Positions 20,291 through 40,831 of a DNA stretch of 64,000 nucleotides are shown in pieces. The position numbers and the translations under genes are program-made. The stretch lies in NCBI RefSeq assembly GCF_040938485.1, contig NW_027271369.1, positions 1,302,001 to 1,366,000 of the forward strand, given 5' to 3'. Below the pieces are notes generated by a model, which saw only the letters and a program-made list of their open reading frames with translations, made no database searches and was not told the DNA's origin. The DNA is from Diadema antillarum. Lineage: Eukaryota. Within the stretch, counting starts at the first letter, position 1, and each line of letters opens with the position of its first letter.

Positions 20291-20579
20291 ATGGAGTCGC
20301 GCTGCACGAGATTTCCAGTGTGGAGAGGGTCGCTTGGGATTGTGTCCTGGTTTATTTTGGTCCTATCGTCGACCAGCGTGGATGCGGACGTGCCGTGTCG
20401 GAGTGCGAGGAAAGGCGTGATACCGGGCGAGGTGACTGTGGGCTTGCTTGTCCCGTTCACGGCGCCGAGTGCGGACGGATTATCATGTGACGAGAATGGG
20501 GCGATTTCTGATGTGGACAGAATCCAACTGATCGAGGCAGCCATCTACGCAACCAATTCAGGAGGAGGGCAGAACATAG
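20291..20579 (+). CDS. GPCR exon 1: signal peptide and start of VFT1
   Basis: MESRC...[22 protein letters not shown]...[11 protein letters not shown]...[12 protein letters not shown]. Acceptor TTTCAG at 20250 upstream of the ATG; donor G|GTGTGG, phase 1. Confidence 0.85.
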
Positions 20580-38500: not shown

Positions 38501-40831
38501 GGCACGTCGTTGAGGAAATGGTGACGGCCACTGAGGACAGTTCTCCACTGGTCAAGTTTACTGTGGTTATGTACAGTTGGACATGGCAATAAGCCTTCTC
38601 TATGTGTATCTACTAATGGTGCTCTCTCTTGGGGCAGCTGTTCAAGCCTGGTGTTCGGTGAAAGTCGTCTTCAGCCGGGAATTCTCTGTGTACATGATCA
38701 CTTTGAGTGGTAAATCCAAACTCTTGTATATTTCACATGAATTAACGCATTGTCATTGATAATAAATCATTGCATTGTGCATGGTTACTGTAGGTCGGTC
38801 CCCTCCCCCCCCCCCCCCCTTCACGTATCTGATCTCTTAATGAATTCAATAAGTATAAGTGAGCAAAATGATGAAATTATGTGCTTTTACTTAATACAAT
38901 GTGGTTGTTTTGTCGAAAATAATAATATAGACTTCAACTATGTGAAAATAGAGCATTATCATAACTCATAATCACCATGTAGTTGATAGGAAGGCAGTGG
39001 TATACATGTTTCTTCAACTAGCGACCCGGAGTTTAAAATGCCTGCAACATTTAACAAGATGTTTTTCCCCCAGTGTCCCTCCTAACCCAAATATAAAGAA
39101 TGGGTTGCTGGTAGTGCCAGGGTAATGATGAAAATGTGATTAATAATACTGTCCTATAGGTTAATTAGACCAGGAAGAATATATTCTATTTCCAGTATTG
39201 TTATCATCAAAATTTATATGTCCCTTTTGCAATTCCGAAAATTAGATTCCCTTCATAAGCTGGTATATTATCAGGGGCGGATCCAGGAATTCTGTAAAGG
39301 GGGGGGGGGCGCAACTAATATTTCTGATGCCACTTCCGGGTTTCATTTCATTTTTTCTTTTTATTTCTTTTGTTTTTAACGATAAATAAGGGGGGGGTGG
39401 CGTGCGCCTCTTGCGCCCCCCTCTGGATCCGCCACTGATTATAGAGGTATATCAATTCAGACCTTTCCTCAGAATAATAAAACTGGAAACTTCTTAGTGC
39501 TGAAGGGGGAAACAATCCTATAGATTATCAGTGAATTTATTCGGATACCGAAAAAGTTGCAACGGTTATTCTCGGTACAAAAGGGGAGAGTATTTTCTAA
39601 TTACATGAGGTTAGTTTTTCATGTTTAGATAAAAGCTCTAAGATTTGTTACAGTAAGATTTCATACATGATGTTGGGAGACATCATTCTTCAACCAGGCA
39701 AAATTTCGTAATGTTTACAAAAAAGATTTACGATATTTAAACTCATGATCATCATGATCATGATTATGATCATGATCATCATTATCACTATCGTTATTAT
39801 GCCTTCTGATAAATATATCTCGACGTCATTCCACAGTGTGTATAATGGTCATGGTTGGTTGGATCATCGCCCTAGTCTTGGTCGAACGCGGCTCCGTCCG
39901 GCTTGTCTCCAGCATCGGCGCCATCGCCCAAGCCACCATCCTCCTCTTCGCGCTCATCATTCCCAAACTAAAAATATTGTTCATGGGAAACCACGACGAG
40001 TTTTGGGAGTCAGCCAGCGTTACGTCGAGCGAGTACGGCGGTGACCCAAGGGCCTCCAGTAAGCCAACCCTCAAGGAAGCATAATCTATCCTGTTTTATT
40101 AACATTTCACCTAATTAAGCACTGAAACCATTTCAGCGGGTTCATTCAATCTTTGTAATTCATTTCATTACTATAAGCAAACAAATTGAAACGACACCGT
40201 TCAAAATTTCTGTTTTGATGTTTCTTCATTAGTTGCTGCAGTAACAAAGAGTAATTTCGAAAAAAAAATATTGATAGAACCATAGGATACTCATTTTTTA
40301 CACTCATATATCTTTATCAACGGTACAAGGGTATCACATTATTAGAACATTACCTATACCGAAGAAAGCTTATGACAATACAAATGTATTTGCAAAGTTT
40401 AATGCTTGCGTGTTGATTGTCTCAGAATGAAATACATATTCAGAAGTCGTCTGAAGTGCTCTGGTTTCTTATTTACGAAAGACATCTACAGAGTGTCGAT
40501 TGCATGATGGTGAGTAGGTTAACCAATGTAAGCAAAACGAGGGCTAATCTCTTGATATGGACTTGTTTTGAGTTGTTTGACGCATACGGGAGTTAGATTA
40601 AGATTATCTGACGGTGCCTTTCACATAAAATAAAGCGCTCTTTCCCATTCTCATCATGCCATTGTTTGTTTGTTCACTTTCGAAGGAGACCTTTCACAGA
40701 TAGATCGGCAACCTTTTGAGGGAGTAGAGGATAACCCTTACGAAGTACCAGGTGACGGAGGCAACACACACGAGAATCCCGCCTACGAAAGCACTGGACC
40801 GGAAAAGTCCATGGATTTTACCAATTTTTAA
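20291..40831 (+). CDS. Whole gene span: class C GPCR with four tandem Venus-flytrap domains and one 7TM (19 coding exons, about 6.9 kb CDS, about 2,300 aa)
   Basis: The hand-assembled exon chain has compatible intron phases throughout. Four sets of mGluR-type motifs recur (GDxxLGGLFxxH, EAxxxAxxxxN, DTC, VIG, ISY, PSD, WxYV, GxC, NPW, xDAxY, VGxW), followed by the class C 7TM motifs (NxPLxxAS, C3.29, RLYRI, ECL2 Cys, IPKL). Confidence 0.93.
21791..21919 (+). CDS. GPCR exon 2 (VFT1)
   Basis: CCTAG| [22 protein letters not shown]...[10 protein letters not shown] |GTGAG; phase 1 to 1. Confidence 0.92.
22403..22569 (+). CDS. GPCR exon 3 (VFT1)
   Basis: TTTCAAG| [18 protein letters not shown]...[13 protein letters not shown]...[16 protein letters not shown] |GTAGG; phase 1 to 0. 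Confidence 0.92.
23165..23464 (+). CDS. GPCR exon 4 (VFT1 lobe II)
   Basis: CCAAG| [19 protein letters not shown]...NGICV...VVVLFV...NLQW |GTAAGT; 300 nt, phase 0 to 0. Confidence 0.93.
23657..24208 (+). CDS. GPCR exon 5 (VFT1)
   Basis: ACACAG| MAGHR...[10 protein letters not shown]...[14 protein letters not shown]...VLAAMY...LTIVNM...SLQE |GTGTAG; 552 nt. Confidence 0.92.
24659..24805 (+). CDS. GPCR exon 6 (VFT1 end and Cys linker 1)
   Basis: CACAG| VSTWKDG...VWTG...[22 protein letters not shown] |GTAATG; phase 0 to 0. Confidence 0.88.
24875..25135. mobile_element. Fold-back element with inverted internal subrepeats in GPCR intron 6
   Basis: AAACCGACACC / GGTGTCGGTTT, GAGTCATACAGC / GCTGTATGACTC and CAGCCCACGAG / CTCGTGGGCTG occur in opposite orientations. 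Confidence 0.65.
25625..25841 (+). CDS. GPCR exon 7 (VFT2 start); GC donor
   Basis: CCCTTAG| [16 protein letters not shown]...[49 protein letters not shown]|GCAAGC. Very close to the mGluR N-terminal consensus. Confidence 0.93.
26340..26707 (+). CDS. GPCR exon 8 (VFT2)
   Basis: TTTGAAG| GLASQRFI...YGVIGPSSD...[11 protein letters not shown]...YPNVARV...FKYVQVVY...SIGNQ |GTAAGA; phase 1 to 0. Confidence 0.92.
26999..28144 (+). mobile_element. Helentron-type HINE (DINE-1/Tsp/Pearl-like) in GPCR intron 8
   Basis: 5' T-run, subterminal IR ATGCCTCCGCCA (27005) / TGGCGGAGGCAT (28104), a (CCGT)n microsatellite, AGGTCA-rich internal repeats, and a 3' hairpin GTCGC-CATA-GCGAC before TTCTAGTT. Confidence 0.75.
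28620..28869 (+). CDS. GPCR exon 9 (VFT2)
   Basis: CCGCAG| HNLCVSQ...[13 protein letters not shown]...YYLVGNNAF...PEILN G|GTTCGT; phase 0 to 1. Confidence 0.92.
29378..29551 (+). CDS. GPCR exon 10 (VFT2)
   Basis: CTCAAG| GITIV...[30 protein letters not shown]...NLCT G|GTAAGC; matches the mGluR motif NTRNPWFxEFWxxRFQCRL. Confidence 0.95.
30164..30468 (+). CDS. GPCR exon 11 (VFT2)
   Basis: CTGCAG| GSETL...[21 protein letters not shown]...VC...[18 protein letters not shown]...SVL |GTTCGT; phase 1 to 0. Confidence 0.92.
31374..31554 (+). CDS. GPCR exon 12 (VFT2 end, Cys linker 2, VFT3 start)
   Basis: ATTCAG| IASY...[13 protein letters not shown]...QADIWIG G|GTACT; phase 0 to 1, joining exon 13 as ADIWIGGFFDI. 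Confidence 0.88.
31615..31910 (+). mobile_element. tRNA-derived SINE with (TTA/TCA)n tail
   Basis: tRNA-like head GGGGTGCTGTGGGTTAGTGGATAAGACTC, core GACCCAGGTGTATAAATGGGTACC and a simple-repeat tail. A degraded copy lies near 38985-39130. Confidence 0.7.
32847..34112 (+). CDS. GPCR exon 13 (nearly all of VFT3, 1.27 kb; two apparent -1 errors at 33758 and 33775)
   Basis: ATCTAG| FFDI...[15 protein letters not shown]...GFDTC...GIVGDQTS...QVSYGASS...[11 protein letters not shown]...[15 protein letters not shown]...GICIA...WIGGDTW...RNPWW...(FECQVSGA)TNRFPNFC...MNAV...[16 protein letters not shown]...YYK |GTATGA. Confidence 0.95.
34440..34942 (+). CDS. GPCR exon 14 (VFT3 end, Cys linker 3, VFT4 start; apparent -1 error at 34682)
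   Basis: GTTCAG| VGVWNSD...[10 protein letters not shown]...[12 protein letters not shown]...CGDLRYQ(G)[34 protein letters not shown]...AGVIGG...QYMQ |GTTCGT. Confidence 0.92.
35641..35806 (+). CDS. GPCR exon 15 (VFT4)
   Basis: GAATAG| ATYSS...[31 protein letters not shown]|GTAAGT; phase 0 to 1. Missed by the ORF track. Confidence 0.85.
36840..37573 (+). CDS. GPCR exon 16 (VFT4; six apparent -1 errors)
   Basis: ATGCAG| [16 protein letters not shown]...VVVVFADK(P)LSKSFLDSA...[14 protein letters not shown]...PCLG...VIDAAY...LCG(D)NYSGFCTEF...(H)LRNAIAG(V)SFIGSDGK(T)VRY...EP(L)FEIWN...DFAG |GTAAGG. Confidence 0.85.
37895..38709 (+). CDS. GPCR exon 17 (VFT4 end, short stalk, TM1 to start of TM6; several frameshifts)
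   Basis: TTTAG| VGTW...SQCSDS...[37 protein letters not shown]...[13 protein letters not shown]...VCGLQR...[15 protein letters not shown]...QWLVQQPP...KFYCGY...[12 protein letters not shown]...[14 protein letters not shown]|GTAAAT. Confidence 0.88.
39272..39437. mobile_element. Short MITE with CAG(G/T)GGCGGATCCAG TIRs
   Basis: CAGGGGCGGATCCAG ... CTGGATCCGCCACTG, flanked on both sides by ATTAT. Confidence 0.85.
39837..40040 (+). CDS. GPCR exon 18 (TM6-TM7 and proximal tail); unspliced read-through stops at 40084
   Basis: CCACAG| [14 protein letters not shown]...[25 protein letters not shown]...SSEYG G|GTGACC. Confidence 0.9.
40686..40831 (+). CDS. GPCR exon 19 (terminal cytoplasmic tail)
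   Basis: TTTCGAAG| [48 protein letters not shown]; phase-compatible with the 40040 donor. Below the 60-aa ORF cutoff. Confidence 0.75.

Follow-up and report, generated by a model that had tools for sequence, protein, structure and literature searches.

A predicted class C receptor with four Venus flytraps on one chain in Diadema antillarum and its relatives among invertebrates

The activation model for those G protein-coupled receptors (GPCRs) that form class C has one Venus flytrap (VFT) per protomer, which is paired in a dimer and coupled to the seven-transmembrane (7TM) domain through a cysteine-rich domain or a short stalk. This model covers the glutamate, GABA-B, calcium, sweet/umami and pheromone receptors, and to our knowledge every characterised class C receptor carries one flytrap per chain. 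Here we analysed a stretch of 64,000 nucleotides of Diadema antillarum (contig NW_027271369.1, positions 1,302,001 to 1,366,000; the window in what follows), in which stop-free stretches of the plus strand between 20.2 and 40.9 kb hold class C receptor sequence. We consider it likely that this is one intact gene of 19 exons for a receptor of about 2,318 amino acids on the metabotropic glutamate receptor (mGluR) branch of class C, that its ectodomain is built of four tandem units of a VFT and a three-cysteine mini-linker, and that the breaks in its reading frame are assembly errors. Our proposal that it is a member of a class C subfamily that is old, spread across the bilaterians, so far undescribed and not represented among the vertebrate matches seen, and in which one amino-acid-binding VFT and degenerate partners in cis would be relayed through disulfide-stapled linkers to the 7TM, is a tentative one.

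By its 7tm_3 domain and its predicted extracellular VFTs, the locus is a class C GPCR. A Pfam scan of 20 stop-free pieces from the window, including three inter-module linker exons, placed the ANF_receptor (VFT) matches in four separate groups, each spanning the profile from about 2 to about 350, and gave one 7tm_3 domain:

20291-24805, plus strand: V1 (VFT1), exons 1-6, ANF_receptor
25625 to about 31470, plus strand: V2 (VFT2), exons 7-12, ANF_receptor
about 31530-34530, plus strand: V3 (VFT3), end of exon 12 to start of exon 14, ANF_receptor
about 34600-37950, plus strand: V4 (VFT4), exon 14 to start of exon 17, ANF_receptor
37895-38709 and 39837-40058, plus strand: the single 7tm_3 domain (Pfam)

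A first-pass annotation, made from the letters alone, had proposed four VFTs and one 7TM without the NCD3G domain. The scan agrees with it, as none of the 20 pieces, which were uncorrected for indels in the stalk, matched NCD3G at E<=0.1. The 7tm_3 match has E=2e-18 at 37940-38521, with a second match in the neighbouring frame, and seven hydrophobic segments are present in the 7TM region once it is read-corrected and spliced. The signal peptide and the short stalk of the annotation were also recovered: the N-terminus of exon 1 is signal-peptide-like, and the stalk after VFT4 is about 60 amino acids long with one cysteine only. No other hydrophobic segment was found in the first 1,339 amino acids, and the 7tm_3 domain is single, in line with the claim that neither a second signal peptide nor a second 7TM lies between the modules. 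Searches by tblastn with the strongest pieces as queries found no further VFT- or 7TM-like sequence in the 64 kb outside 20-40 kb, so that the 7TM is single and the gene has no class C neighbour. Between the four modules, pairwise identities are only about 25-34%; they share a common origin and are thus old duplicates. Four flytraps in a single chain stand against the one-flytrap rule of the characterised members.

The nearest solved relatives of VFT3 and the 7TM of the window are the group II receptors mGlu2 and mGlu3. VFT3 (exon 13) matches mGlu3 in the PDB with E=3e-54, the 7TM of an orthologue gives E=7e-24, and transmembrane segments (TM) 2 to 4 of the window match mGlu2 best (E=6e-8). 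Like the mGluRs, VFT3 keeps the alpha-amino-acid triad together with the Tyr and the Asp of the pocket, and the lobe-2 Cys, the TM3 Cys and a Cys in the second extracellular loop are present. Unlike mGlu2 and mGlu3, which have one flytrap per chain, the receptor has four, and in the place of NCD3G, which was not found here, it has three-cysteine linkers and a one-cysteine stalk. VFT3 also differs from the mGluRs in having Tyr and Leu in place of the two arginines that hold the distal carboxylate of glutamate. With the GABA-B receptor (GB1/GB2) it shares the connection of flytrap to 7TM by a short stalk, with no cysteine-rich domain. The GABA-B receptor pairs a binding flytrap with a non-binding one, which would resemble the putative degenerate flytraps beside VFT3, but its partner flytraps sit on two chains, and the 7TM match to GABA-B is far weaker (E of about 5e-5, versus 1e-23 for mGlu3). 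The Saccoglossus orthologue XP_002735016, labelled as an mGluR, was repeatedly placed in the GABA-B class by a classifier, and its length and domains went uncommented (PMC5568607).

To build the exon model, we followed the proteins of the sea cucumber, the crinoid and the acorn worm and looked for GT/AG pairs between which the frame stays open. The rebuilt model agrees with the 19 exons and the module spans that had been claimed, and all 18 introns are GT-AG:

20291-20579, plus strand: exon 1, start codon, signal-peptide-like N-terminus and first VFT1 strand; donor phase 1
21791-21919, plus strand: exon 2, VFT1
22403-22569, plus strand: exon 3, VFT1
23165-23464, plus strand: exon 4, VFT1
23657-24208, plus strand: exon 5, VFT1
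24659-24805, plus strand: exon 6, end of VFT1 and linker 1
25625-25856, plus strand: exon 7, VFT2
26340-26707, plus strand: exon 8, VFT2
28620-28869, plus strand: exon 9, VFT2
29378-29551, plus strand: exon 10, VFT2
30164-30468, plus strand: exon 11, VFT2
31374-31554, plus strand: exon 12, last VFT2 strands, linker 2 and first VFT3 strand
32847-34112, plus strand: exon 13, most of VFT3; ANF_receptor E=9e-53; two frame breaks
34440-34942, plus strand: exon 14, last VFT3 strand, linker 3 and start of VFT4; one frame break
35641-35806, plus strand: exon 15, VFT4 lobe 1 and part of the hinge; ANF_receptor E=2e-5
36840-37573, plus strand: exon 16, remainder of VFT4; six frame breaks
37895-38709, plus strand: exon 17, last VFT4 strand, stalk and TM1-TM5; six frame breaks
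39837-40058, plus strand: exon 18, TM6, TM7 (P-K motif) and start of the cytoplasmic tail
40686-40831, plus strand: exon 19, acidic C-terminal tail, N-P-A-Y motif and stop codon

In the sea cucumber orthologue (P0157), exon 1 has its counterpart at residues 26-77. The frame is clean in the region of exons 2-6, where ANF_receptor matches with E=9e-7 and 6e-18, and VFT2 gives ANF_receptor matches on four pieces of exons 7-12. From exon 1 through the first 923 nt of exon 13 (exons 1-13a) the spliced sequence translates without a stop into 1,339 amino acids. The splice between exons 12 and 13 splits a Gly codon within the conserved VFT3 strand IGG/FF (the slash marking the joint), joining exons 15 and 16 yields the sequence of the orthologue, and the stretch encoded by exon 14 is uninterrupted in orthologues (P0004, residues 1407-1603). 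Two of the module junctions, V2/V3 in exon 12 and V3/V4 in exon 14, lie within single exons, as had been claimed, and the V1/V2 boundary is an intron of 819 nt (24806-25624). The exons sum to 6,946 nt; with a net addition of 11 nt for 15 inferred indels this becomes 6,957 nt, or 3 x 2,319, so the corrected protein is estimated at 2,318 amino acids plus the stop, close to the roughly 2,300 given before. The exon 19 NPAY is of the NPxY type; the Saccoglossus tail has a similar NPAY and the crinoid an NPA-x. A conserved site for sorting or for an adaptor is a possible reading of the motif.

The claim that the exons are phase-compatible did not hold for the window sequence. Frame jumps in the alignment with orthologues revealed about 15 one-base breaks between about 33757 and 38560, which the first-pass annotation had read through, at roughly the following positions in exons 13, 14, 16 and 17:

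33757 and 33797, plus strand: breaks in exon 13
34680, plus strand: break in exon 14, in a CC run
36985, 37389, 37430, 37463, 37493 and 37520, plus strand: breaks in exon 16
37908, 37977, 38058, 38173, 38497 and about 38560, plus strand: breaks in exon 17

Thirteen of the 15 behave as a missing base and two as an extra one, several of them in homopolymer runs of C, A or T, and the frame between the breaks can be read without any in-frame stop. On 32750-38720 we aligned contigs from four public runs. Two of these, X1 and X2, are DNA from the same species; the other two came from a search for RNA runs, of which X6 proved to be a relative's genomic DNA, with about 93% identity, and X10 a tiny exon-only set. 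Over 5.9 kb, the X2 contig differs from the window by 35 gaps and 40 substitutions; indels are thus about as frequent as substitutions, which argues for consensus error rather than polymorphism. Twelve of the 50 indels were listed, and at all eight that are borne by X1 or X2 (the other four are in X6 only) X1, X2 and X6 agree with each other against the window. Seven coding corrections spanning 37389-38497 are supported in this way, five of them in exon 17 (37908-38497): a G added after 37389, a T after 37463, one base removed at 37908, a C added after 37977, one base removed at 38058, and a C added after 38173 and after 38497. The breaks at 37389, 38173 and 38497 had been predicted from the protein alignment before the reads were compared. 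With the seven corrections, a single frame is open between the acceptor of exon 17 and about 38560, a stretch that takes in the stalk and TM1-TM4. At least seven of the frame breaks are therefore errors of this assembly.

A decaying pseudogene, in which the breaks would be real mutations and the four-flytrap frame a relic, would fit with some 15 breaks concentrated in the 3' half of the assembled coding sequence and with the fact that no RNA junction was seen for the species, X10 giving exon-internal contigs only. We find this highly improbable. Every break is a single-base indel without an in-frame stop between them, the repaired base is present at the seven listed coding sites in two other samples of the species and in a sister species, indels match substitutions in number against X2, and the pocket and TM motifs are intact. 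Because the read contigs carry the repaired bases and their use reopens the frame, we attribute the breaks between 33.76 and 38.56 kb to single-base errors of the assembly, in a patch with poor polishing, and do not take them as a sign of gene decay. The patch at 33757-38560 is dense in single-base indels, whereas the 13.5 kb upstream of it, coding sequence and introns together, give a clean frame. Other genes of this genome may look broken through the same kind of patch.

Similar uncharacterised models had been expected in invertebrate databases, and they exist. An exhaustive phmmer search with the translation of exon 13 returned 5,946 proteins, and many of the top-scoring ones are 1,800-2,900 amino acids long with three to five separate flytrap matches. 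The relatives with several VFTs, all of them labelled uncharacterized or hypothetical, include:

Echinoderms: Apostichopus japonicus XP_071829224 and Anneissia japonica XP_033109263
Hemichordates: Saccoglossus kowalevskii XP_002735016 and a Ptychodera fragment
Cephalochordate: Branchiostoma floridae XP_035691717
Nemertean: Tubulanus XP_074641006
Molluscs: Sinanodonta KAL3856574, Octopus XP_052832771, Argopecten, Babylonia, Physella and Bulinus
Chelicerates: Limulus XP_013773119, Centruroides, Ornithodoros and Dinothrombium

Nine relatives that we scanned with Pfam have three to five ANF_receptor domains and one C-terminal 7tm_3, with no NCD3G (threshold E<=1e-3 in eight multi-VFT relatives). 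The number of VFTs is three in amphioxus, four in ambulacrarians and chelicerates, and five in molluscs and the nemertean; the Apostichopus, Anneissia and Saccoglossus proteins each have four and one 7tm_3. In tblastn, the window is collinear with residues 26-2186 of the 2,226 residues of the Apostichopus protein, and it also aligns module by module with those of Anneissia and Saccoglossus. The identity to these ambulacrarian members is 30-50%. The exon-internal junctions, the single 7TM and these collinear four-VFT orthologues uphold the claim of one gene and not four. The uncharacterised models thus share with the window the architecture, the collinearity, the position-wise orthology of the flytraps and the three-cysteine linkers, and vary in the number of modules (three to five).

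A maximum-likelihood tree of 63 flytrap modules gave the same order. V1 and V2 of the window are sister to V1 and V2 of the sea cucumber (100/97 and 99/94), and V3 falls within the ambulacrarian V3 clade with 100/100 support, so that V1, V2 and V3 all lie in position-specific ambulacrarian clades with 99-100% support. Every ambulacrarian module position forms a clade of its own, and the four-module order is therefore older than the split between echinoderms and hemichordates. Ambulacrarian V1 and protostome V1 adjoin in the tree, a placement that is compatible with an even older origin. A duplicated two-domain unit (A-B-A-B) was rejected, as the tree pairs neither V1 with V3 nor V2 with V4. 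Two Logan contigs without introns carry the architecture in one open reading frame (ORF): L001 (9,030 nt) encodes 2,802 amino acids with five VFTs and a 7TM, and L002 (8,611 nt) 2,376 amino acids with four VFTs and a 7TM. As complete ORFs free of introns, they resemble mRNA assemblies. The search for echinoderm fragments across the V2/V3 junction gave only single-exon, genomic-looking pieces, and the sea cucumber orthologue, used at full length in a word search, gave no match, probably since its 90% cluster is represented by a 424-amino-acid fragment.

The locus might also make several products, if internal promoters or polyadenylation gave rise to secreted flytrap-only proteins and to a receptor with one or two flytraps, the full four-VFT form being rare or absent. 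The intron at the V1/V2 boundary could hide an alternative first exon, and isoforms X1-X3 are present in amphioxus. We regard this as quite unlikely, since the other two junctions lie inside exons 12 and 14 and no second signal peptide or hydrophobic segment precedes the 7TM. Moreover, exon 7 is unable to begin a protein alone because it is directly preceded by a stop codon, the modules have kept their order from before the divergence of echinoderms and hemichordates, and the intron-free contigs of two other lineages hold all modules and the 7TM in one ORF.

The Polypterus senegalus models labelled "CASR protein, partial", with 7-10 VFT stretches, have top phmmer scores and, like the window gene, many ANF_receptor matches in one predicted protein. 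Unlike it, they have NCD3G between the flytraps and no 7tm_3. For this reason they are best seen as mis-joined tandem V2R/CaSR-like exons, which makes them annotation artefacts, and a gene fusion of this kind was rejected for the window. Two of them (P0003 and P0011), in which seven to eight ANF_receptor domains alternate with NCD3G and a 7TM is lacking, could mislead searches by architecture.

The internal flytraps of the window, and of all orthologues examined, are followed not by mere spacers but by linkers with a conserved three-cysteine motif:

24749-24778, plus strand: linker 1, motif C-x3-C-x4-C after VFT1, in exon 6; at the same site in orthologues
31470-31493, plus strand: linker 2, motif C-x-G-x-C-x2-C between VFT2 and VFT3, in exon 12
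34533-34556, plus strand: linker 3, three-cysteine motif between VFT3 and VFT4, in exon 14

A motif of this type (C-x2-5-C-x1-4-C) stands behind nearly every VFT in all phyla examined, and nearly every flytrap has the lobe-2 Cys. In mGlu2, the lobe-2 Cys of the VFT forms a disulfide with the cysteine-rich domain. The two features also tend to be lost together: where the linker motif is absent or shortened, after V3 of Centruroides and of LoganC and after V4 of Apostichopus and of the window, the lobe-2 Cys is gone too. The exception is V4 of Anneissia, which keeps its lobe-2 Cys next to a one-cysteine stalk. In the echinoderms, including the window, the stalk after VFT4 has lost the three-cysteine motif and has one Cys only. 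As motif and lobe-2 Cys occur together, the motif may be a vestigial cysteine-rich domain that is stapled to its flytrap.

Five pocket columns were compared in the modules (mGluR1 numbering: Ser165, Thr188, Asp208, Tyr236 and Asp318). VFT3 has S, S, D, Y and D at these positions, VFT1 has N, T, D, D and H, and VFT2 has D, S, N, a gap and N. VFT4 of the window is broken by indels and falls outside the alignment; in three ambulacrarian orthologues the VFT4 pocket is mostly lost. Among the scored VFT1-VFT3 of the window gene, the mGluR-type amino-acid pocket is thus kept only in VFT3. Several modules of the molluscs and the nemertean keep the canonical pocket.

These residues suggest how the receptor might work. 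VFT3 could possibly be the orthosteric sensor for an amino-acid-like ligand, although we hold this with considerable doubt; with the distal arginines replaced, glutamate itself is probably not that ligand. On this view VFT1, VFT2 and VFT4 would be degenerate and would serve as partners, spacers or modulators, by analogy with the non-binding flytraps of GABA-B2 and T1R3, which act in trans. Each flytrap may be tied by a disulfide from its lobe-2 Cys to the following linker, comparable to the link between VFT and cysteine-rich domain in mGluRs. Closure of VFT3 would be passed on to VFT4, the short stalk and the mGluR-like 7TM, and the receptor would most likely be part of a dimer.

The first-pass annotation had suggested a multi-sensor or long-reach receptor outside the characterised class C architectures. 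The architecture indeed lies outside these, whereas the multi-sensor part is doubtful for this lineage, the pocket being kept only in VFT3 among the scored modules of the window. A true multi-sensor would integrate different ligands (ions, sugars, peptides or macromolecules) on its four flytraps; alternatively, the ectodomain could be a long one of the adhesion type. The flytraps of CaSR and the T1Rs bind ligands other than amino acids, each of the four modules has persisted for a very long time as an orthologue specific to its position, with 30-50% identity, and the canonical pocket is found in several mollusc and nemertean modules. On the other hand, V1 and V2 of the window and V1, V2 and V4 of its ambulacrarian orthologues lack at least three of the five pocket residues, and the conservation of the modules may reflect a structural role. 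We therefore think this reading unlikely.

Several results count against the reading of one intact gene whose flytraps are stapled to linkers and coupled to one another. Only seven of the roughly 15 coding breaks, among the 12 of 50 indels listed, are confirmed by reads, and X10 gave three short exon-internal contigs, with no splice joint and no module junction crossed. VFT4 of the window has a Tyr at the position of the lobe-2 Cys and a stalk with one Cys. An AlphaFold2 model of the crinoid V3-linker-V4 is confident within the domains (mean predicted local distance difference test score, pLDDT, of 83) and gives no support to a rigid coupling or an intramolecular pair of flytraps, and it refutes neither. 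Because its predicted template modelling score is 0.53 and the linker with the three-cysteine motif has a pLDDT <50, nothing can be said from it about the geometry between the flytraps.

As far as we found, the family is visible in databases and without characterisation in the literature searched: full-text searches, which included the orthologue accessions and had most subscription journals outside their coverage, gave no description of a class C architecture with several flytraps. A 2025 survey lists the metazoan forms of the glutamate family as ANF plus NCD3G, ANF alone, and Cache plus EGF, and describes the architecture as tightly constrained (PMC12716839). In a survey of amphioxus GPCRs, there is no mention of a multi-flytrap architecture (PMC2246102). 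With three to five flytraps per chain, this conserved family breaks the one-flytrap rule, and it would lend itself to testing over what distance, and along which route, the closure of a flytrap can be transmitted. The receptor is also a candidate amino-acid sensor of marine invertebrates. For annotation, it indicates that very long models of this kind represent genuine genes rather than tandem arrays fused together, and that assembly patches dense in indels can make intact genes appear broken.

Apart from the receptor, the 64 kb hold no clear gene. Nine flanking ORFs of 113-226 amino acids (1-20000 and 41000-64000) matched no Pfam family above noise, and 263 N at 7725-7987 represent an assembly gap or a masked stretch. 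Intron 12 holds an AT-rich tandem repeat at 31831-31910, with a period of 12 and 6.5 copies. At 27188-27697, within intron 8, a unit of about 150 nt is present four times with a spacing of about 153 nt, and each copy has runs of AGGTCA(A) repeats; AGGTCA is the sequence of a nuclear-receptor half-site, and the unit is probably a small tandem or interspersed repeat.

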